NCBI GenBank assembly: GCA_000708835.1
Contig: DF237127.1
Location: 62,001-126,000, forward strand
Origin: Klebsormidium nitens
Taxonomy: Eukaryota > Plantae > Klebsormidiophyceae
Length of the DNA: 64,000 nucleotides
Direction: 5' to 3'
Shown here: positions 1 through 33,511 of the stretch, piece after piece
How positions within the stretch are numbered: position 1 is the stretch's first letter
Layout: every line of letters starts with the position of its first letter
Notes under the pieces: generated by a model
Databases searched by the model: none
The model's input: only the letters and a program-made list of their open reading frames with translations
What the model was told of the DNA's origin: nothing
Program-made: the position numbers and the translations under genes

Positions 1-2012
1 CTCCGGTGACGACATCGCCAAGTTCCTGTGGATGGTCCGTATCGGTGGGGGAGTCTACCCGCACATTAAGGAGCCGGATTACCTGGTGCGCTTTGTTCCG
101 CGTTTTCGCACTTGACTCCCTGTCTTGGCTTTGTTACCGCCTTCCCCCATTGAGCTGTGATTCGAGGGGGAACCCCGCTTCAGAAGACTGCCCACCTTCC
201 TCCCTCCGTTGTTCAGGGGAAGGGGGGAGGTGTCGCCTTCTCAATAATCCTTTGCAATGCTTCTGCTGCCTAAGTTCTGCACATGCTGAATCGGCTCTGA
301 CGTGTTTTCGTAACCCGTTGAAGGCGGTAATTTTGCACTCCCAAAGCTGATGAGGCTTCGTCTGCTTTCCCCTTCCCACCCTCTTCTGTCTGCTTGTATT
401 GACATCGAATCTAATTGCCTTGATTGCCCTGTCTGATCCTTCTTTTTTGACCTTCTTTAAGCTACATCAGTGACGCTCCAGCCATCGTTTAGAATCAGAA
501 ATTGCCAGGGCTCAGGCCTTTTCCTTTTGAATGGGAAACTTTTGAGTAGAAAAACACGAAAGCCTTGGCCGCACTGAAGAGGGTCTGGCAAAGACCAAAC
601 ACTCTTCTCTTGCAATAAGAACAAGGATAATTTAGAAGGACGGAACTCTGGAAAAGCGATTTTAGCCTTTCTTTCTTTCCCATCGATAGAAAGGAGGTTG
701 TGGGCTCAGCCTGAGTTGGGTTGTCGATCCCCTTGAGTGTTCTTTGCTAGCCTCTCCTCATTTGCTATCGCTCTTTTTCCTTGTGCAGAAGCACGGGAGC
801 TACCGCATTGACTCGGGAGCCACCTCCACGATGCTCAACTGCCTCATGTATAAGCTGTCGTACTACAGGTAAGCAAGCGCGTTGCTCTCAGCGCATCCCC
901 CTTTTGATTGCAACATCCTTATTGAGCTTTCTTTACCCGACGTAGTGGTTCTCAGAGCGAGCTAGCCAGACCAAAGTGCAACCCATGCAGCTCGTCCATG
1001 TGTCAATATCTTTACTCGACTCGTCGTTCCTTGAGCATGGTTCGGATATCAGTCATTTCTTAAGCACGGTTCAGTTAGCAAATTTCCCTTCTGCACAGAA
1101 TATTTGGCTTTCGTGCAGGTCTTAGACACCGTTCCCACAGCGTCATTTCTTGAGCCCGGTTCGGTCAATGGTCGTTCTTTAGCAGGGTCGGTCAGCAGAA
1201 CCTCCATTTCAATTTGGAAGCCATTTTTTCTGTCTTTTCGTTCAGGTTTGCGGATGCCACCATGGCGCCGGATGGTACTTCGGGGTACGACCGTGTCCGG
1301 CGGACGGAGATTGGCAAGAAGAACATCAAGCTGCGGTACTTTGAGGAGGTAAGGACTACTCTTCTACTCTCGTTGGCGTCCCCCTAAGCAAGCGTTTCTG
1401 GGATCAGCTTGACGACCTCAAAGGACCGTTGTTGTGTTACGTGACAGAGTACTGTCAGTTTCTGCTGCTTCTGGCTCGTAGAGGCCAATGATGATGGACT
1501 TACAGTCACATGTGTAGAAGCTTACGGAAAGCGTTGTCTGCCCCAAACATGCTCATTTTAAGGGTGCTTGTTGCATCGCCGATGTTGATGAGATTTCGCA
1601 AACGACTCCCGGGTGGGGCGATGCGCCGCCTGCAGTGAAGGCGGTGGTTGAAACCTAGCCATTGTCGGACCTCTCTCAATTTGCCTTCAATATATGAGAT
1701 CCTCAAGATAGGGATGCTTCACACTGTCAATTTACCGAATGCTTATCCGACATGCATGTAGATGTTGTGTCTACAAGCTTTAGGCCATGAGCGTACTTAG
1801 TTGCAGGCCGCAAAATCATGTGTCAAAACAGTCCGAGGATATTTTCGAAGTTGGGCTCCTTCAGTTCACAAAGAAGGTTTTCAGAATCTTGACATTGCTC
1901 TGTTTCCCAGGTGTTCACGACGCACCATTGGATGGTGCGCATCTACCGGCTGAAGGACGTGCCCAACCGGCAGAAGGGCGCGCGGAAGAAGGCAGCCAAG
2001 GCGGTGAGCTAG
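1..2012 (+). CDS. STT3: Oligosaccharyltransferase catalytic subunit STT3 (STT3A-like), 3' part only
   Basis: GT-AG exons 1-85, 789-868, 1246-1348 and 1911-2012 splice in frame to [104 protein letters not shown]...AVS*. This includes the DxxK motif and the typical STT3 C-terminus. The 5' part lies outside the window. Confidence 0.96.
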
Positions 2013-2023
2013 TCCTCATTATT

Positions 2024-2199
2024 CCTAAGAAAGATAATAATAAGCCAAGATAAAAAAAAGCTCCGACCAACACTGAAAACCCTAACCCAGAAAGATACCG
2101 GCTCCCATACCCACCCTAACCATCAAACTAACCCTACCCGTCCCAGTGCGGTTTAATCTTATTATTAACGCGCCTTATTGATATTATGATCTTTCTTGG
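2024..2199. mobile_element. Degenerate MITE-like element just after the STT3 stop codon
   Basis: Its core (2060-2146) is the reverse-complement homolog of the internal part of the 7231-7405 element (gggacgggt.gggttagtttg..ggttagggtgggt...gggttagg.ttt..agtgtt). It is flanked by imperfect AT-rich inverted ends (aagaaagat..ataag / cttatt..atctttctt). Confidence 0.55.
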
Positions 2200-3674
2200 G
2201 TTTAACTCAATCCTCAGAATGGCACGCAGCCAATATGTTTGCTTCATTTTGGAACTCCGGAAAGCATTTGTCATTCAGATCCAGGTTTGCCGGTTTGCTA
2301 CGAAGTCGTCCCGAGGCGCTTAGTCTTTTTCTCAACTTCAAGACGATCAAGGACACCGCTGCGATCCGCTTAACCACCGCTGTGCTTCCAAGCGGAGTCG
2401 TTGTATCTTGTCTTTACTCTGGTGGAGCAAGCTCACATCATGCACATACTGAACGCGCATCCTTTGTTGCAGATTGGCTCGCCAAAGAAGTCAAACAAAC
2501 TGCCAAAGTCGGCGAGCAAACGCAAGAGCCGCATAGGAGGATTGCGTTTTTAGAGGAACAGAGCTAAGGTTTTACGAGGCCGACATGTTTGCAGATTGTC
2601 GTTGGCTTACCACTTTCAAACAATGGGTTCTGAATTTTGTCCATCAAAGAGGAGACTAATCGTTTGTCTTCGTTCCTTCTTGCACTCACAGTATGGTCCT
2701 TAAGGCAGCCATCTTCGGCGGCAAAGACATGCTCGAGAGAATCGTCAAAACAGGGCGGTCAAAGGATGCATATTAGTCCAATTACATGGACTGTACTTCT
2801 CTTCCAAGCTTGATTATCCATTGGCCGCCGCAGCTATATCACGCAATTATATGCACGGCATGCAGCACATGCCAGGATTTGCAACACGGCATGCAGAGCA
2901 AACTTTGCACATGTGCATGACAGCTGCCTATACCATGGATCAGGCTCATGGAATAATCAGGACACATGATATTCAGTGCAGTTCATTGTATTAATCTTGC
3001 ACGACAAGACGAAACACCTACCCATAGCTGACGTACACGCAGCATGCGTGCAGATCATGATTGCCTGTGCTAGATTCAGATGCAGCCCATATGCGTCGTG
3101 CCATTGTTCATAACAATCCCACATCATTGTGGCAACGTGGCTGCCACATTGTTGCATGGCAACCATGACTTCAAAGTGCAGCAAACTGTGCCTGCAAAGT
3201 CGTGCATAACTCGCATTTTTGACTCCATGCCAAACCGTCTGTCTTACACCAAGAGCTAGTTCAGTTGTTTGGCTCTAGGTATATCAACAAGCCAATGCCC
3301 TTGCGAGCCCCTGACCCTGACTCGAAACTGGACTAAGTTCATTGTACAACAGCTTGCTTCAAGCTCAAACGAGGTCCCTAGCTTAATGACCATCAAGCAC
3401 TTTAATTGATCACCTGCAGCGTTGGCGCTGAAAAAATGGGTTCCTAAACTGAGGCCCCAAAGCCTTCTCACACTGGCTCTGAGAGCACTCGGTCACTTTG
3501 ACCGACAAGCGCTGCGAGTCGCAGCTTTGCAAATGTCATCCTCAATGATGCATTTCTGCAGCACACCCACCTAGACCTCAAATTCACAATAGGTTACACG
3601 ACCTGTTTCGACGCCCTGTAATTACAGCACTTCTTTTGACGAACAGACTTGAACACCTAACCCCTTTTGAGACC

Positions 3675-5914
3675 CTAATACTCCGGGTGCGAGCGCCGGC
3701 GTCCGATCGCGCGCAGGTCCGCCATCGACTGCGACCGCAGCGGCTGGAACTGCGCCATTGGCCGGAGCGCCGTCGCCACGTCGGCCCCCTCCGCTGCCCA
3801 TTCAAACGCCTCCCCCTCGACGTCGTTCATCTCGCTGTCCCTAAACCCGAGGTTGTCGGCGAGCATCGCTTTTTGGGGGTAATTCCCACCGACGCCCCCC
3901 GAGGCGCGTCCGAGAAGGTTGCTGTGGCTGCCGTTGTTGTTCTTCCGGCGCTTGGCGTACGAGTTCTCGGGCTTCGCGAGGTGCTGGATGGGGCTCGTGA
4001 CGACGTCGGCCAGGCTGTGGAAGGAGCGTGACTTGCCTCCATAGTGTTGGGAGAGGCCTCGTCTGTAAGGACAAGGAAGGATGAGGGTTAGTGATTGCAA
4101 CCAATTGTTTACTACAGCAGGCCCTTGACAGACAATGATCAGAACAAATCTGTAAGGTGCAATAGCAGGGAGTATAGATGACTATGGTGATTGGTTCCAA
4201 GCATGTGGTTTTGACGAAAGAACAGAATAGTTGGGGGATGGCTGAAACAAAATCCTACCAACTTCTGACTGTATTTCAGCCTGCTTGAAAGTAATGGGAG
4301 CGATTGGCGAGGGCAAAGCATGACGCAAAATGAAGCCAGCAAAGAGAGCGTGCTTCTGAAGCGCTTCGAATACCCCAGGCTGTTTATTCAAGAACGCGCC
4401 TTTGGCAAGTGGCATTCCTTCAAGAACATAGCCTGCACTGTTGTGCTGCAAAAAGCTTCCGGAGCAAAGAAAGCTGCTAACACGAAATCTCTACAAAGAT
4501 GGGAACAGACAACAACCTGCTTTATCAGGATCAGGTGCACAAAATGCACACTCAAATGAAAGAGAAAACAAGAGGGAGAGGAGACATACCCCGCATTTGC
4601 TAAAAGATGCAGCAAGCCACAGGAAGAACCAAAAGTGCTCCAAACAGCAGACTTGGAAAAGTTTGCTGATAGTACACCAGAAAACAAAGAGGAGAAAGCA
4701 GCAAAGGGTGCAACCTGAGCAGCAGAAGCAGCCACAGGCACCAAAATAGGGTTTATCTGCATAAAGTGCAACAAAAAATGCTCCCGGAAGCAACCAAAGT
4801 CATCCCCGCCTGGAGGAACCTCGAAGAGAAGCACTGAAAATATCACAACTGCATCCAAACCCCTTGCAAAACCAAGAATCGAAAGCACACATATGCCCCT
4901 GTCATATGAAACAATGGATGCAACATACCTGAGCCCTCGGCCAACTAGAGGCGCGAGCTTATCCTCCTCAGCTCCACAGCTCCTCTCCCCCCCCTTGGCG
5001 AGCGCCGACTCCGCCTCCATGTCCCAATTTCTCGCTAGGGGTTTGGTCGCGCCGTCCATTGAACAAGAGTTTCCACTCCCATCTGAATCCGTGCGGTTTG
5101 GACTCACGGGATTGGAGTCCCCGGAACCCCCTGCCGAGAGGATTGAGCTGAGGGATGACGTCGGGCTGGGCGAAAAGTGGCTGAGCACCCGGTGCTTGTC
5201 CCCGGGCGCGAAGAAGAAGCCTCCATCCCCTGAGCTGGCCCCCGGGGAAGACCTCCGTGCGGAAAACCCGCTGCTGCCCAGCTTTTCCAGCGAGTCTTGC
5301 GAGCATTCCCGAGGATAGAAATGGACGTGCGACCGACCGAGGGGGCTGGGAGGGCAATTGCCATGCTCGGGCGGGGACCGCAAGCTGTGGGAGTTCAGGG
5401 AGAGGGCCTTGTGAGAGGCGATGGAAGCCCGCCGTTTCTGCTCGTAAAAGCGAGCGGCGGATGCGGCGAGGCTCTCCCTACCCCTATCCGGTTTCACATT
5501 CTCGTGCCATCCATTCGAGAAGCTGGCAACTCGAGGAAGCGCGGGGTTTGCAGAAGGGGAGCTGTGACTGAAGGGGTTAACGGAGGGCGCGCTAGTAGAG
5601 AGGGGGGGGGCGGCAGACTGCGCGGAGAATTGGAAGGATGGGGGGGGGATGGGACGGGCGGCACTCCTTTGGGGTTGGGACTGGCCAGAAATAGAATGGG
5701 AGTTGCCCTCCCCGTACCAATCCCGGGCCGCTTCAGAGTCAGGCAAGTTGGGGCCATCGGAAGGACCAGACACACCGTCGGACGCACCTTTACCCTGCGC
5801 CTCCATGTACATTGAGAGGGCGGAGAGCTTCTTGAGGACAAGTTCGTGGTGCGCAAGAATTAAGGGACCGCTCTGCTCGTAGGGCTGGTATTGGTTCTGA
5901 ACCTGGCACGCCAT
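3675..5914 (-). CDS. OXS3 (oxidative stress 3)-like Ser/Pro-rich protein
   Basis: Exon 5914-4929 splices GT-AG to exon 4062-3675. The join gives GLRRGLSQHYGGKSRSFHSLADVVTSPIQHLAKPENSYAKRRK, the conserved OXS3-family motif. The ATG at 5914 is the likely start but is not certain. Confidence 0.82.
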
Positions 5915-27826: not shown

Positions 27827-29153
27827 CGCTTCAAATTCGAGATGATTTGAACAGAAACTGTTGCTCGCTTGCGTGTGGCGTATGTACAGAATTCAGACGC
27901 TGGGCTCCGACCCGGAGCCAAAGGGTAGCCCCCTGTATATTTTTGATGGGGCAGGTGCGATGAGTGGTCCGTTCGTGTGACGTTTGTGCTCGTTGGCGCC
28001 GTTGAAAAACCGGCCGATGTCGCTGCGCTCTCAGAAGAAAATGCGCGTAGTCTGACGGTAGTGATTCGAGTCCTTGAGGCAGGGATGCAGCGGCAAAGCT
28101 CTTCTACTCTCGAGCCTCTATCATGATTCCTTTCGAAGTACAGGTCCGTACGTTGATTGTTGCATGTGTACCTATACCGCGACGAGAGTTGTGTGGGTCG
28201 ATAATCATCGCGCATGTATGCGCATGAGTTTCACATATGCACCTAAGTTGGGCGTCTAGTGACAACGCTGCTTGTCAACTGCTGCCGCAACCAGATCCGC
28301 AACATGAGAGATGGCGGCACGATCTCAACCGCCAGAATTGCGAGCCAATACATCCGGCAAGCCGAAACCCACCGCTCATGTAATCATGCTTCCCTATAGT
28401 CAGAGGTGAGCGGAGTCCGCACACTGGCGGCATGGAAAGTTTATTTGCAGATTTGAGAGAGATGCATGTGATTATAATGGTCGCGACAATTGGAAGATCA
28501 GATCATTGCGGCCTGAAATGCAACGACGGTATACTAACATCTGCTGCTACATATGCTCAGCCTGCGTTATAGCTTGCTCGCGTCGAATTTCGTCAAAGTT
28601 GCGCCTCGAACGATCACGTACGAACGCGGTACGGGCCATGGGTATACAAAAATACATGGTTGCGGGCCATGCCTCATGCAGCTTATGTCACGATTTAGCA
28701 CCCACGTTTGCGCCGCGGACTTTCATCATGGACAATCCATGAGTGCGTATAATCAAGAGCTACTAGCCCCGACCGCCGTGTCTTACTCTGAAGAGGGGCT
28801 TGATAAAAAGCTAGGCTCCGGCCTCCGACTTGGCATGTATATACGATGACAAAATCAAGTTTGGTCCTTTAGATGATCAATGATGATTTGGTCAAAATTT
28901 AAGCAAAGTTATTAAAGACAGGACCGATGGCAATATATGATTTTTGCGCCTTGCTGCGCCGCTTATTCGATTTCACTTCTTTGTGAAATTAGCTGATCTG
29001 CGCTCAATCGAGTCTGCCATACATCCACCCTCTCAAACCACTGACGCTCATGACAATCGCTAGGAGCTAAACATTTCCAAACAGCGCGTTAAAACCCCCC
29101 GGCCGAACGCTGGTACGTACCGGGCACTGTGCGCCTGCCTCACACCGCTGAGA

Positions 29154-32100
29154 TTACACCCGGTAGTAACGGTCACCGGCCCGGAAGGCCTTTTCGGAGA
29201 CCATCTGCCCGGTCTCGGGCGCCTCGAGCTGGGTGCTGCCCACATAGATGGCGGTGTGGTAAGTAGATCCGACGGCTGCGAAAGCGTCACGCGTGAAATC
29301 AGCATGAAGTAGATGGCGCTCGAGGTCAGAAGAAGGTTTTTTACGCTGGAACGGCGAACAACACCAGCAGGTCAATGACATGATGCAACTAGAGGAGGAG
29401 CGGCCTTTTCCTCTTAGACAAGGACGCAAGTCCACCATCTCCAACCATGGCATAGTCATTTTAAGTCGCTGCCTCGCCTATAGACGATTTAAGGGTAGAC
29501 AGTCAAACGCCTCTGAAGTAAGGTAAGAAAGAGAAGAATACCGCTAATAAGGCGGCCAGAATGCCTCGCACGCTGCATTTTCAATTGCTCGGTTGATGTG
29601 AACTGACGATAAACACACCACACTCACTCGCCCACTTTCTTGCACTAGTACATCATCCGGTTGACTCGAAATTAAAAGCACCAACAGTGAGCTGCTTTCT
29701 GGTCTCCTGACCATCATCAAACCTTCTCTGTCCGTTCAAAGATCAGAAGCTAGTACAAACGAGGCAGAATCTGGCCTCGTGAAGTTTCTGCTCACTCGGG
29801 TACAGCTCGCAAACATGCCCTGCCGCGTTGAGCTTGCAACTGTCTGTATGAATCACACGAGACGGGAAACTGATTTCGGTAAGGAAAGTGGTATCGCCCA
29901 GTCGAGCACACACTGTTCTTATGGAGACAATACGTCGTCTCAAGCCAGGCTTATTGCCTCGACGGTCCTACCAAATCAGTCGAGGATTCCTTGGAGGCCC
30001 ACGTCTTGTGAAGCCAGAGAGCAGCTGAGGTCGGGGGGTAAGCCCATCTTCAGTTCACACTCGGCAACTGAAGCAAGAGAGCACACACAACTCACGTCCG
30101 TAGAAGATGAGGTCGCCCGGTTGGAGCTGCGCGCGCGTGACCTGTTTCCCGCCAAGGCGCGCCTCCTGGCCGCTGGTGCCCCCGGACCCGAGCACGTCGG
30201 AGCCACGTGCCTTCCAGACGGCCCAGCGGGTGAAGCCCGAGCAGTCGAAGCCGGTGGTAGAGCTGGCGGGGCAGGGCTGGGGGCCATGGTAGCCGCACGT
30301 GGGGCCGGTGGAACAACAACCTGGAGAATCGATTTGACTCGATTCAGATTCGAGGATTCAGGGTTTGAGAATTCGGAGTTTGGAAATCAGCTCATGAAGG
30401 ATTATGATATGAGGGTTTGAGAGGTCAGGGCGGGAGGTCTGGGGCGATCGAAAGCCTCCCTCCATTTTCATGATGAGTAACACCGGATTTTAAGAGGGCG
30501 CAGGGGGCCAGAGTAGCGGCACCCGGAACAACAAGACCTGGGGACAATTGTCCGTTGAGGACAATTGCCAGCGTGGCAAACAAGGAGGCGCGCAGGAAAA
30601 GGAGACACGACCTGAGTTGCGAGACTCAAAGGACTGTGAGAGACTGGTTTGGACACGTGGAAAAGGCCAAGACGAGGAGGAGATGACGAAAAGGCTTGCG
30701 GCTCACAGCAATCTTCGGGAGTAGATTTGTGGGAGTTTAGACGGACTCCTTACCGTGAGTAGGACCAGGCGATCCACCGTGGCCTAGACAAGGACGGCAA
30801 TAACGAATCGGTTAGCGACTGGATGGATTGACGAGAAAGGACGGCAGCAAGCAAAGCGGCAAGTATGCTTAGTCCTCGTTTCCTCTCTTTCTTATAAAAC
30901 CCTCCCTCGTTCGCAGCGTAGGGAAGCAAGCCTCGTTTACATGCGCCTCTTCTTTCCTGTATCTCACGATCCAAGCCACCCTTTGCCTGCAGGAAACACG
31001 TCGAAATAGCGCTGAATCCCACTTCCTCTACGAGTCGAAATCAACGTCTTACCTCCCCCCCAGGAGTAAGGAACCTTCCCGACCTGAGTCCTGCCCCAGG
31101 TGACAATCGAGCTGCCCCCCCCGGAAGAAGGCGTGCTCGCAGTGCAGCACTGGATGTTTGAGGGCCCGGGGCAATATCCCGGGGTGTGGGTTCCGGTGCA
31201 CTGGGCGGTGTCCTTGCAGGTTCCGGCCTGGCCGTTCACGGAACAGGTGCCATAGCCAGAGGTGCAGCACTGGATGTTGTAAGGACCGGGGCAAAGACCT
31301 GGGGGGGAAGGATGAGGGTTACGTAAACGGTTAGTAATCTCAAGGGTGGAAAGCTGTTGGGGTTTGGGAACTCAAGTTTGTGGTACGAGATGGCCATTGA
31401 GGTACAGGAGAGAGTAGCGGCCGTGCAGCACTGGATGTTGGAGGAAACGGGGCAGAGACCTGGAGACAGGAAAGAACGGGGCTAAAACTATTCGAGAGGC
31501 GGGAGTTGGGATGTCAGCTTGACCTTTAGGTGGCTAGTTTTTGAACAGGTGACACAGCCGTGGTGCAGACTGGGGATTGGAGGGTCAGGGGCCAAGACCT
31601 GCAATGGGCATGGGCTGGGGTTGGGATTTGCGCATGCATGGTGTTTGCAAGACCGTTGCGTTCTCTTTTTTATCTCAAGAGCAATTGACTGCGTACTTTT
31701 GATCAATACTGAATCATTACAGGGAAGAAGGGACTCGAACCCTTAACCTTTGGTTTTGGAGACCACTATTCTACCGTTGAAAATACTCATCTATTTTGAT
31801 GACTTCAGTAGGATCACAGAAAGTCACGTTTGTGAACGAGGAGGGCAAACCAGAATGAGTTCAGCAATCAGGTGCTGCCACCTTTCGTGCAGTGTAATGC
31901 TGGCATGAATTAGGGGGGGTGCAAATGAAGGGAAGAGTCAGCATCTATTTGTAGCAAAACGGCGAAAAAGTGGGTAAGCTTCAGGGAGCATAGCTGAGGT
32001 TCCTTGCACAGGGGCAAGCTCGTTTCGATATGAAATAAAGAAGATGAGAAAGCAACAGGCAATTGTGGTGGGGTAGTAAGCTAATATAACAATCTTTCAA

Positions 32101-33237
32101 TTGGTTGAACCAATAAGATCTTTGTAAAGTCCGTCAGAAACCAGAAACAACCGGAAAGAGAGAGAGCTCAAATGAGAGTCCACAGACATTTGAAGATACC
32201 GAACTCAGATCAACGTGGCATCACGAACTGGAAAGGTCGACATTGTCAAACTGATCTGGAAACCTGAGAATGGACGTTGTAGACTCTCGTCCAGCCTTTG
32301 AGCTTCTACTATTGTATTTGAAGACCGCTTATGATAGTTGCAAAATGACTGTCAGCTCAACGAAGCTTCACGGGAGCGTGACATCAAGTCCTCTTCCCCA
32401 AAGAAAGCCCAATAGTGAGATGACAAGCCATGCTCGAGCAAAGATGGACTTTCCTGGGAATGACCAGACCAAGAAAAGTAAGGAGAGCATGGTCCAACTT
32501 CTTTTCTTAAAAGAATAAACAAAAGAATTTCAAGTATCACTAGCAACAACGGTGCTCTTGAAAGTGCCTACCTGCAGTCTTGGTTCCAGAGCATGTGGAG
32601 ATGTCCTTGCAGGTCCCGGTCTGTCCATTGGCGGTGCAGGATTTGGGCGTGCAGCACTGGATGTTGGCAGCGCCGGGGCACAGGCCTGAAATGGACAGAA
32701 GGAACTTTGTGTTGGCCCGGTTGAGGCTTTCAGCTTCAATATGAATGCATTCAGCATGAAAAGATCCATCTGGATTCAATGTGCTGATTGAAAGACTTCA
32801 TCTGTGAGACATCATCATGGACGATTCAACTGCGTGCGGAGCCTTTCTCTGTTGGAGGCTCAAGTGTATCTAGAAGAGCCTAACCCCTTTCTGGATTTTT
32901 AAAAACATAGACCTACTGGAAAGCACTACACGAGAAGTTGGTCTTAGAGGATTTCGCTGGTTATCAGTGTCCTCGCATACTACCCCATGCCTCTTAAGCG
33001 CACTACTTCTAGGGCAGCTCAAGTACACCTAATACCAATCCAACCAGCCAGCTCCATTGCTTGAAGCACTGAGCTTCCACCTTGACACCACTCACCAGCG
33101 GTGCTGGTTCCACCCTTGTTGGCGCACTGTGTAGTGTCAATGCAGGTTCCGGAGCAGGCCGCTAGGGCCTGGTTGACCGACAGGCTCAGGAAGAGTGCGG
33201 CACAGAGGATCGTTGGTGTGAGGGAGATCCTCTTCAT
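29154..33237 (-). CDS. Secreted NlpC/P60 (papain-like) peptidoglycan endopeptidase with N-terminal Cys-rich repeats
   Basis: Exons 33237-33096, 32685-32572, 31298-31053, 30783-30754, 30320-30096 and 29275-29154 (all phase-1 GT-AG introns). They give signal-like MKRISLTPTILCAALFLSLSVNQALA, three G(L/Y)CPGxxNIQCC modules, then VPYSWGGG...GFDCSGFTRWAVW...LQPGDLIFYG...YHTAIYVGSTQLEAP. Confidence 0.9.
30014..30051 (-). repeat. 38-bp dispersed repeat, copy 1 (intronic)
   Basis: On the minus strand reads gaagatgggcttaccccccgacctcagctgctctctgg, 37/38 identical to 61998-62035. Confidence 0.85.
31388..31459 (-). pseudogene. Decayed extra Cys-module exon inside the NlpC/P60 intron
   Basis: Acceptor followed by GLCPVSSNIQCCTAATLSCTS, then an apparent 1-bp loss versus the SCTxNG consensus. 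No phase-compatible donor found. Confidence 0.6.
31720..31792 (-). tRNA. Organelle/bacterial-type tRNA-Trp(CCA) fragment with damaged 5' acceptor strand
   Basis: Minus strand reads ...ttcaacggtagaatagtggtctccaaaaccaaaggttaagggttcgagtcccttcttccctg: D-arm GGTAGA, anticodon loop CTCCAAA and T-loop GTTCGAGTCC. The 5' end (agatgag) does not pair with the 3' cttccct, so it is probably non-functional. Confidence 0.75.
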
Positions 33238-33511
33238 CGTGGCTTCTTGAGGCGTAAACGTGCGTAAGGAAAGGGAGACAAGTTTTGGGTTTGAGAAGGA
33301 GATGAATGGAAGAGTAGGAAAATGACCAGAAATATATACGCACCTGACATGAACCAGTGAACGATCCAACAGCAGTGCCAGTGGATACTCCAAAGCGTGC
33401 AAACGCCTACCCGGACCGTATCTTTAATTGCCTTTGGATCACCTTCATCACCTAGCTATATTATGCCATTGAATGCTGGCAGCTGTGAGGAAGTGCCAAC
33501 TGGCAACACTG

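Follow-up and report, generated by a model that had tools for sequence, protein, structure and literature searches.

KFL_001780100 of Klebsormidium nitens: cysteine-rich repeats joined to a bacterial-type NlpC/P60 domain

In the green alga Klebsormidium nitens, the spliced nuclear gene KFL_001780100 is expressed, and its product joins three six-cysteine repeats, belonging to the published CysRRep module, to an NlpC/P60 domain with a conserved catalytic triad. The reading favored here, with a probability of about 0.6, is that the protein would be a secreted, disulfide-rich peptidoglycan endopeptidase, derived from an actinobacterial C40 peptidase and acting outside the cell on bacterial walls. 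The general phenomenon, i.e., the presence in eukaryotes of CysRReps together with bacteria-derived wall hydrolases, has already been described, and this gene is one tidy case of it; its value lies in the individual case and its testability and not in a new principle.

Gene structure and expression

The gene lies in a 64,000-nucleotide stretch of scaffold DF237127.1 (the window), with a DCAF1 gene on one side and an ING/PHD gene on the other (Table 1). Its coding sequence of 879 nt is interrupted by five introns, all GT-AG and all in phase 1, and the gene model is residue-for-residue identical to the database protein (P0151). The database annotation of the gene already read NlpC/P60 domain-containing protein.

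A first-pass annotation, made from the sequence alone, had proposed a spliced gene of six exons, and the RNA data bear this out: all five junctions are matched exactly by RNA contigs from four studies, a single contig of 1,214 nt covers the six exons, and two additional RNA runs reproduce every junction. In run X1, the RNA depth is about 2000-4000 over the exons versus about 5-43 over the introns, and the contigs continue into UTRs past both ends of the coding sequence, to at least 33500 and 28900. Because this spliced and expressed nuclear gene sits between DCAF1 and ING/PHD, contamination is excluded, as had been argued earlier from the introns and the alga-like neighbors.

The gene has been resident in the algal genome for a long time. 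This conclusion follows from its host-like composition (GC3 of 0.775 in the coding sequence versus a GC content of 0.46-0.52 in the introns), from exon 2, which corresponds to exactly one repeat period (38 codons, from the LCPG of repeat 1 to the Gly preceding the LCPG of repeat 2), and from two decayed copies of repeat-exon starts in intron 2. The copy closer to exon 3 is absent from the mRNA, in which 31298 is joined straight to 32572. ARAGORN found no tRNA across the window; Rfam calls one tRNA in intron 2.

Table 1. Positions of the features of KFL_001780100 in the window
Feature	Position	Strand	Remarks
Complete gene from start to stop codon	29154..33237	minus	six exons, 292 aa
Exon 1: start codon, signal peptide, first portion of repeat 1	33096..33237	minus	RNA junction 33095/32685
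Putative signal peptide, residues 1-26	33237-33160	minus	ends ALA/A
Exon 2, 114 nt	32572..32685	minus	RNA supports both junctions
Second, more decayed repeat-exon start copy, intron 2	31543..31601	minus	79% identity over 61 nt to exon 3 start
Decayed acceptor and repeat-exon start copy, intron 2	31419..31463	minus	82-88% identity to exon 2 and 3 starts
Exon 3: repeat 2 end, repeat 3, Ser/Gly linker, NlpC/P60 start to PYSWGG	31053..31298	minus	
Repeat 3	31260-31141	minus	
Ser/Gly linker	31140-31108	minus	
Exon 4: 30-nt micro-exon (HGGSPGPTH), within subfamily-specific insert	30754..30783	minus	RNA contigs show both junctions
Exon 5: Cys-stapled insert and catalytic Cys204 in GFDCSG	30096..30320	minus	Pfam NLPC_P60 on this exon alone, 33 bits (cut-off 23); RipA alignment
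Cys204 codon	30243-30241	minus	
Exon 6: catalytic His259 and Glu270, C-terminal tail, stop codon	29154..29275	minus	RipA alignment
His259 codon	29258-29256	minus	
Glu270 codon	29225-29223	minus	
Stop codon TAA	29156-29154	minus	

Catalytic domain and cysteine-rich repeats

The NlpC/P60 domain with intact Cys, His, and Glu residues, recognized at first from its motifs, is confirmed by the Pfam profile NLPC_P60 (PF00877), whose match to the full-length protein covers residues 161-280 and reaches 51.2 bits (cut-off 23). The NCBIfam profiles resume in exon 6 at the positions directly following exon 5. The motifs are GFDCSG (residues 201-206), YHTAIY (258-263), and QLEAP (268-272), and in an alignment with Mycobacterium tuberculosis RipA (phmmer, 5e-12), their C204, H259, and E270 coincide with its DCSG, H..IY, and LEAP positions. 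The insert of the catalytic domain contributes four extra cysteines, namely, C179, C180, C186, and C194.

The structural comparisons agree with this assignment. The AF2 model has a pLDDT of 86.6, with 83-97 over the catalytic part, and it matches 48 NlpC/P60 chains of the PDB at E <= 1e-3, which supports a papain-like alpha+beta fold. The best Foldseek matches are SagA of Enterococcus faecium (TMt 0.86), RipA (rmsd 2.0 Å, 30% identity), RipB of M. tuberculosis, Cg1735, and RipD, and RipA entries mutated at C383, H432, and E444 also occur among the matches; the top structural match in the Atlas is an actinobacterial C40 cluster (TM 0.88). The RipA-type resemblance noted at first, which includes the shared PYSWGGG and LEAP motifs, is therefore well-founded, although RipA lacks the 14-residue Cys-stapled insert of the algal protein, and the latter lacks the coiled-coil and inhibitory N-terminal parts of RipA. 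Judged by sequence profiles, the algal protein resembles RipA, RipB, and RipC and is not an orthologue of them, as exon 5 scores 18.7 to 27.8 bits on NCBIfam NF033741, NF033742, and NF038345, against cut-offs of 335-625; with scores so far below these cut-offs, substrate specificity is not confidently transferable from the Rip enzymes. Some NlpC/P60 enzymes are non-lytic, and others, such as RipD, are not even catalytic.

Upstream of this domain, the signal-peptide-like N-terminus proposed earlier is indeed present: judged by eye, the leader shows the n-h-c organization typical of signal peptides. A hydrophobic leader is also kept in the relatives; in the algal protein, this region is modeled by AF2 with low confidence. 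The mature protein has 23 cysteines, reckoned as 22 paired residues (11 putative disulfides) plus the nucleophile. From these features, the protein is probably secreted.

The leader is followed by the cysteine-rich region, which the first-pass annotation had also reported and which can now be refined to three repeats of six cysteines each (residues 27-60, 61-98, and 99-138). A Ser/Gly linker (residues 139-149, with an AF2 pLDDT below 50 at residues 143-145) separates them from the catalytic domain. These repeats are the published CysRRep module, an identity that had been overlooked. CysRRep is defined as Cx6-9Cx5-7Cx8-11Cx7-8CC, N-terminal to an enzyme domain, and it precedes prokaryote-derived wall hydrolases in many eukaryotes (Daugavet et al. 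2019, 2020; bioRxiv 10.64898/2026.06.07.730663). Repeats 2 and 3 (C-x8-C-x5-C-x8-C-x7-CC) fit this definition, and repeat 1 (C-x3-C-x5-C-x11-C-x7-CC) has a first spacer that is short against it. The protein itself (A0A1Y1HZS0_KLENI / KFL_001780100) was detected by the authors' CysRRep profile with an E of 4.5e-28 (supplementary file 15 of bioRxiv 10.64898/2026.06.07.730663). The main text of that survey has no Klebsormidium or KFL_001780100, and the survey supplies no gene model, transcript, phylogeny, or structure for the gene.

A search with residues 27-140 gave 153 matches, including Scytalidium GH24 (58%), Cryphonectria GH24 (60%), and a Mortierella protein (54%). In most of the 120 repeat-sharing proteins listed, the partner is GH24, GH25, phage-tail lysozyme, VanY, Amidase_2, M23, CHAP, SpoIID, M15, or NlpC/P60, and among these 120, the partners of known function all act on peptidoglycan, with the exception of FGE-sulfatase. 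Other searches with the repeats were less informative: Pfam and NCBIfam found no family on the repeat exons, Foldseek of the repeat model against the PDB gave no match (best E of 2.4), as uninformative as the comparison with Swiss-Prot models, and a feature-based Atlas search with exon 3 returned weak leads only, with scores of at most 0.79. We also considered whether the repeat might be the SH3-like domain with which fungal GH24/GH184 enzymes bind walls; size and disulfide number led us to reject this, since the repeat has 34-40 residues and three disulfides versus about 73 residues and two disulfides in the SH3-like beta-domain.

Possible roles of the protein

According to the favored reading, a cleavable signal peptide would route the protein into the secretory pathway, where the three CysRReps (nine putative disulfides) and the Cys-stapled loop would fold while Cys204 stays unpaired to serve as the nucleophile. 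The Cys204-His259-Glu270 triad would then most likely cleave the gamma-D-glutamyl to diamino-acid bond of stem peptides, like RipA, RipB, and SagA, in the walls, or the debris of walls, of the bacteria that dwell on the terrestrial, biofilm-forming Klebsormidium. We infer both the substrate and the bond from these relatives, and the architecture together with the relatives points to a putative antibacterial role. CysRRep enzymes share the same layout as the algal protein, i.e., a signal peptide, N-terminal six-Cys repeats, and a wall hydrolase with bacterial nearest relatives, and CysRRep is abundant among antimicrobial proteins (PMC12855814).

The role of the repeats may be approached by analogy with one tested case, the placozoan lysozyme PLys, whose catalytic domain is GH23 instead of NlpC/P60 and whose repeats stabilize the enzyme and are removed by cleavage during maturation (PMC12855814). 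In the same way, the algal CysRRep block may stabilize the enzyme and may be clipped at the Ser/Gly linker. The block may also aid wall targeting; the PLys repeat decreased enzyme activity (PMC12855814), which counts against a simple targeting role for CysRRep.

Two other bacteria-derived enzymes, the NlpC/P60 proteins of Trichomonas vaginalis and LytFM of the house dust mite, are likewise reported to be used by eukaryotes against bacteria. They are independent acquisitions from subfamilies other than that of the alga: the Trichomonas enzymes bear bacterial SH3 domains and are weak matches to the algal model (Foldseek E of about 4e-4, 15% identity), and LytFM is single-domain, unlike the repeat-bearing algal protein.

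The architecture is identical if the secreted enzyme acts on peptidoglycan without killing, either taking wall debris as food or releasing muropeptides for algal sensing, and the sole difference from the favored reading is the physiological purpose. Fungal muramidases have been suggested to serve in feeding on bacteria that are already dead, as opposed to competing with bacteria (Moroz et al., PMC10394673), and the placozoan CysRRep lysozyme works in extracellular digestion (PMC12855814). A photoautotroph has a less obvious need for nutrients from bacterial walls, and we regard this alternative as unlikely, though of some weight.

The domain might also have taken on a substrate other than peptidoglycan, for instance algal wall glycoproteins or another amide, or have become a non-catalytic binder, as the NlpC/P60 superfamily contains acyltransferases, amidases that act on other compounds, and binders without activity, among them RipD, itself a structural match. 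Furthermore, the doubled cysteine C179-C180 is common to the algal protein and its closest relative, P0001, and is not found in the bacterial and fungal relatives compared. Against this stand the intact triad aligned with active RipA, the complete insert architecture shared with bacterial wall hydrolases bearing PG_binding_1, and the peptidoglycan-acting CysRRep partners, which together make such a recruitment improbable.

A role in the plastid, where the enzyme would remodel the alga's own peptidoglycan, e.g., by splitting the wall at chloroplast division, had been raised from the start, and Klebsormidium is among the streptophytes that retain plastid peptidoglycan genes, so that a DL-endopeptidase could in principle work there; NlpC/P60 enzymes of the LytE type have been discussed as septal splitters in Bacillus (PMC4015805). 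However, the leader is short and hydrophobic, like a signal peptide and not a transit peptide, the eleven putative disulfides point to ER folding, and the closest relatives are actinobacterial and fungal, fungi having no plastids. In charophytes, Klebsormidium among them, this task reportedly falls to a LysM-M23 DipM of cyanobacterial origin, and LysM+NlpC proteins are not evident across cyanobacterial genomes (PMC4015805). With the secretory leader, the disulfides, and DipM already serving the plastid, a plastid role is very unlikely.

Relatives, origin, and significance

The closest relative of the algal protein is P0001; scanning metagenomes for its genomic copy gave nothing the first time and, the second time, only proteins that share the repeat plus a single distant gene of fungal type (L094). 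The closest non-eukaryotic relatives are C40 peptidases of Actinomycetota at about 50% identity (the named ones being Fodinicola, Microbispora, Actinokineospora, and Pseudonocardiaceae, 47-51%), which share the insert GGGH..PGP..GTC.GY.G..PC. Actinomycetes are the most frequent bacterial partner in the CysRRep survey (bioRxiv 10.64898/2026.06.07.730663). A bacterial genome scan with exon 5 found 80 loci, none of them cyanobacterial; these were distant NlpC/P60 loci of at most 61 bits against the full domain and served as tree outgroups. The exhaustive catalytic-exon search, the structure atlas, and the bacterial genome scan gave no plant, chlorophyte, or cyanobacterial relative, in agreement with the early remark that the family is not standard in land plants, and no relative of the protein was found among viral contigs.

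In the catalytic-domain tree, the family is embedded among Actinomycetota sequences. The closest bacterial group (P0037, P0056, and P0072) carries 2-5 N-terminal PG_binding_1 repeats, and the PG_binding_1-NlpC/P60 bacteria fall in the subgroup that contains the alga's clade. These hydrolases, e.g., P0037, belong to the catalytic subfamily of the alga, share the algal insert, and resemble the algal protein in the C-terminal tail, but they bear PG_binding_1 repeats replacing the CysRReps, a bacterial signal, and no introns. The P0037 gene lies on its contig beside an HTH/NB-ARC/TPR regulator. The Klebsormidium clade itself has no settled position or bacterial sister, and AU tests rejected none of three groupings for it, including a single clade of alga and fungi (p = 0.25), so that donor, route, and number of transfers are not established by this tree.

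Mortierellaceae (Entomortierella, Dissophora, Mortierella, and Podila) have uncharacterized proteins with the full CysRRep-NlpC/P60 architecture and the same insert as the alga, at 40-43% identity to P0001 over >90% of its length. In Entomortierella, the gene is interrupted twice, once behind residue 33 and once behind W217, each time by a phase-0 intron, in contrast to the five phase-1 introns of the alga, and no intron position common to the two genes was found. The Entomortierella catalytic domain clusters with the PG_binding_1-bearing bacterial proteins (94/94, which does not reach the star threshold of the tree), whereas the clade of the alga is left without a placement.

The nearest relatives being actinobacterial and none of them plant or cyanobacterial, horizontal acquisition of a bacterial-type domain is favored over endosymbiotic descent. 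This part of the first-pass annotation stands; a direct step from bacterium to alga is not required, because the Mortierellaceae share the architecture. An old gene of vertical eukaryotic or endosymbiont origin, lost in most lineages, would suit the fully host-like introns and composition and the lack of a resolved bacterial sister, but it is the least probable account, as the named eukaryotic matches are limited to Klebsormidium, one further relative, Mortierellaceae, and a few other early-diverging fungi, and as the family is nested among Actinomycetota with no relative in plants, chlorophytes, or cyanobacteria. In the favored reading, CysRReps stand in place of the N-terminal PG_binding_1 repeats of the actinobacterial peptidase, and after its acquisition the gene would have gained five introns, a host-like codon usage, and further repeat units by exon duplication.

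Tentatively, the whole cassette of signal peptide, CysRReps, and actinobacterial NlpC/P60 may have been assembled once in a eukaryote and then passed, in one direction or the other, between a Mortierella-like fungus and the Klebsormidium lineage. This account, which we hold at well below even odds, draws on the AU result for a single eukaryotic clade; otherwise, the shared architecture would be a coincidence of two independent fusions. If the cassette did pass between soil eukaryotes, a streptophyte alga on its way to land gained a ready-made, fungal-style antibacterial effector and then expanded it by exon duplication.

The gene offers a clean system for asking whether CysRRep stabilizes, targets, or masks an enzyme and how it becomes joined to transferred genes, as the bacterial relatives carry PG_binding_1 at the same N-terminal position and the algal gene displays repeat growth and decay, exon by exon. 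No land-plant counterpart of the peptidase was found in the searches made. Streptophyte algae such as Klebsormidium inform the toolkit with which plants moved onto land amid dense bacterial communities, and a peptidoglycan peptidase of bacterial origin that is well expressed and secreted would represent a concrete and testable element of algal antibacterial defense or microbiome control.

Gene structure and transcripts

The six-exon spliced gene proposed for window positions 29154-33237 is real. All five introns are GT...AG and of phase 1, and joining the exons gives an open frame of 879 nt (292 aa). RNA contigs built from public runs, which come from four different studies, match every junction exactly, and a single 1,214-nt contig covers all six exons. 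The five junctions were seen again in two further RNA runs, and in run X1 the exon depth was about 2000-4000 versus about 5-43 in the introns. Exon 4 is a 30-nt micro-exon that encodes ten residues of an insert in the catalytic domain, and it was faithfully spliced in the RNA runs with contigs over it. The exon 5/6 junction is independently supported, because the NCBIfam RipA and DIP1281 profiles match exon 5 and continue in exon 6 directly where the exon 5 match leaves off. On the exons (window 28900-33500), the assembler's word depth was about 2000-4000 in one 2024 study versus 6-224 in the others, which hints at strong, condition-dependent expression, word depth being a poor measure of it.

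The translation equals the database protein P0151 over 292/292 residues (title "hypothetical protein KFL_001780100 [Klebsormidium nitens]"; UniRef label NlpC/P60 domain-containing protein), and on scaffold DF237127.1 the gene is flanked by genes for DCAF1 (2,015 aa) and for an ING/PHD protein. Contamination, which the first-pass annotation had argued against, is thus excluded.

Features of the NlpC/P60 gene (window positions) and of its protein (residues)
Feature	Position	Strand	Remarks
Exon 1	33237-33096	minus	reading and RNA
Exon 2	32685-32572	minus	reading and RNA
Exon 3	31298-31053	minus	reading and RNA
Exon 4	30783-30754	minus	reading and RNA
Exon 5	30320-30096	minus	reading and RNA
Exon 6	29275-29154	minus	reading and RNA
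Decayed acceptor and repeat-exon start	31419-31463	minus	intron 2; 82-88% identity
Decayed acceptor and repeat-exon start	31543-31601	minus	intron 2; 79% identity
Rfam tRNA match	31720-31792	minus	intron 2; 41.3 bits, gathering score 29
Stretch matched by RNA contigs of two runs	31644-31815		12-13 differences
Leader	residues 1-26		basic start, hydrophobic core, ALA/A end; signal-peptide shape, by eye and low model confidence
Three repeats	residues 27-60, 61-98, 99-138		six Cys each
Ser/Gly linker	residues 139-149		modeled at low confidence
NlpC/P60 domain	residues 150-292

Catalytic domain and its origin

The NlpC/P60 domain was read correctly, with its Cys, His, and Glu motifs intact. Against a cut-off of 23, Pfam NLPC_P60 gives the full-length protein 51 bits, and exon 5 by itself reaches 33 bits. 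Mycobacterium tuberculosis RipA is the best match by sequence among solved structures (5e-12), with GFDCSG, YHTAIY (by its His), and QLEAP (by its Glu) aligned onto the corresponding RipA motifs; a 14-residue insert is absent from RipA. The AlphaFold model (mean pLDDT 86.6) is matched in Foldseek by Enterococcus faecium SagA, RipA (rmsd 2.0 Å), RipB, Cg1735, and RipD, and the top ESM Atlas structural cluster consists of actinobacterial C40 peptidases (TM 0.88), with no plant cluster among the ESM Atlas structural matches. The term "RipA-type" is therefore right as resemblance but not as orthology, since the NCBIfam RipA and DIP1281 scores are far under their orthologue cut-offs.

When exon 5 was searched exhaustively with HMMER, 240 proteins matched at E ≤ 1e-3. 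The closest, P0001 (246 aa, 55-57% identity overall), has the same architecture and the doubled Cys of the insert, but two repeats; it is found on two identical short intronless contigs (one JGI metagenome sample, one SRA run) of Klebsormidium-like composition. The named bacterial relatives are Actinomycetota (Fodinicola, Microbispora, Actinokineospora, Pseudonocardiaceae), with 47-51% identity over the domain and the same insert, GGGH..PGP..GTC.GY.G..PC.A..T.G.DCSG. A genome scan with exon 5 found no cyanobacteria among the 80 bacterial loci fetched. Other relatives occur in fungi of the family Mortierellaceae (Entomortierella, Dissophora, Mortierella, Podila, Lunasporangiospora, Gryganskiella, Linnemannia), many with the same repeat plus NlpC/P60 layout; the Entomortierella gene differs in having two phase-0 introns at other positions. 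A metagenome contig (L094:3168-4035; JAABUH010017280.1) carries a fungal-like gene of this layout from a more distant subgroup; its short intron falls in a loop that immediately precedes CP..QCC of a repeat, roughly at the place of Klebsormidium introns 1/2.

In a maximum-likelihood tree built from 60 catalytic domains over 147 columns, Klebsormidium and P0001 form a pair (support 100/96). Nine Mortierellaceae rows group together weakly (83/88), and their sister is a set of three proteins of bacterial type that carry 2-5 PG_binding_1 repeats; one of the three adjoins a typical actinobacterial HTH/NB-ARC/TPR regulator. This 12-row clade (94/94) is slightly below the star threshold of the tree. 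The Klebsormidium pair forms a polytomy with these groups, and AU tests rejected none of three placements: all these eukaryotes as one clade (p-AU 0.25), the pair with the Mortierellaceae-plus-bacteria clade (0.40), or the pair with the short Mortierellaceae proteins (0.38), so that the number and route of transfers are not fixed by the tree. Bacterial ancestry of the catalytic domain is well supported by the company of its relatives.

The cysteine-rich repeats

The signal-peptide-like leader and the Cys-rich repeats of the first-pass annotation are both present. The repeats belong to a published class, CysRRep, with the spacing Cx6-9Cx5-7Cx8-11Cx7-8CC, reported from 1,246 UniProt proteins and mostly N-terminal to prokaryote-like parts; its commonest bacterial partners are actinomycetes, the main repeat-carrying bacteria are Myxococcota, and its function "remains unclear" (bioRxiv 10.64898/2026.06.07.730663 and earlier papers of the same group). 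In the K. nitens protein, repeats 2 and 3 keep exactly to this spacing, and the first spacer of repeat 1 is short. Supplementary file 15 of that preprint includes the K. nitens protein (E 4.5e-28) and a second one, KFL_000880020 (Peptidase C39-like), neither being named in the main text; CysRRep may thus be resident in this genome with several partners.

The repeat is not covered by any Pfam model, and its confident structural model (pLDDT 92.4) resembles no solved structure. With residues 27-140 as the query, 153 proteins were retrieved; among the matches listed, the repeat is N-terminal to Ascomycota GH24 lysozymes, GH25 muramidases, phage-tail lysozyme, DUF1906, VanY, Amidase_2 (rotifer), M23, CHAP, SpoIID, M15, and NlpC/P60. 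About two dozen weaker matches among those listed pair a CysRRep-like repeat with FGE-sulfatase (PF03781) or SH3_3, the named carriers being two myxobacteria, P0284 (Nannocystaceae) and P0307 (Minicystis); FGE-sulfatase is the sole frequent partner in this list that does not obviously act on peptidoglycan. The SH3-like domain by which fungal GH24/GH184 enzymes bind walls is a different module, and its identity with the repeat was rejected on size and disulfide count. The Mortierella sp. AD094 protein P0155 has five CysRReps and a C-terminal domain without a Pfam match (residues ~235-380), whose VGIFQQ motif is reminiscent of lytic transglycosylases; reached by module walking, it may be an unrecognized wall-hydrolase family.

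Introns 1 and 2 interrupt the Gly codon that directly precedes LCPG in repeats 1 and 2; the exon between them, exon 2, therefore spans 38 codons, the exact length of one repeat period. Both decayed copies in intron 2 are skipped in RNA and are relics of further exon duplications. ARAGORN called no tRNA at the Rfam match in the same intron, and the RNA contigs that match around it continue into AT-rich sequence unlike the window; this stretch was probably copied, as a fragment, from an organelle genome or from a different tRNA locus.

Proposed function

The protein is best read as a DL-endopeptidase that is secreted and acts extracellularly on bacterial peptidoglycan (probability about 0.6). 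Its mature form has 23 Cys, 18 in the repeats, four in the catalytic insert (C179, C180, C186, C194), and Cys204, which fits 11 putative disulfides and one free nucleophile (Cys204). The repeat block would be a stabilizing N-terminal module, possibly removable. In PLys, a placozoan CysRRep lysozyme and the only experimental case found in a literature search, a two-repeat block raised thermal stability at the cost of some activity and was cut at the linker during maturation; the same study remarks that antimicrobial proteins abound in repeats of this kind (PMC12855814). A targeting role is also suggested, because CysRRep accompanies a dozen different wall-hydrolase families and stands where the nearest bacterial proteins have their PG_binding_1 repeats.

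That the secreted enzyme serves scavenging or signaling instead of killing is a less likely reading that fits the same data. Work on the alga's own plastid peptidoglycan, raised as an alternative in the first-pass annotation, is very improbable given the secretory shape of the leader, the heavy putative disulfide load, which points to folding in the ER, the homologues in plastid-less fungi, and the published report that charophytes including Klebsormidium use the cyanobacterium-derived LysM-M23 protein DipM for this job, LysM+NlpC proteins not being evident in cyanobacteria (PMC4015805).

The gene model with its label, and the CysRRep class with this protein in its supplementary list, were already known, as was the acquisition of NlpC/P60 by eukaryotes such as Trichomonas and dust mites. 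To these, the present analysis adds a demonstration that tree and AU tests leave the transfer route unsettled, the transcript-verified six-exon structure with its micro-exon, a check of the triad and fold, actinobacterial relatives bearing PG_binding_1, Mortierellaceae relatives of the same architecture, and evidence that the repeats are gained and decay through exon duplication.
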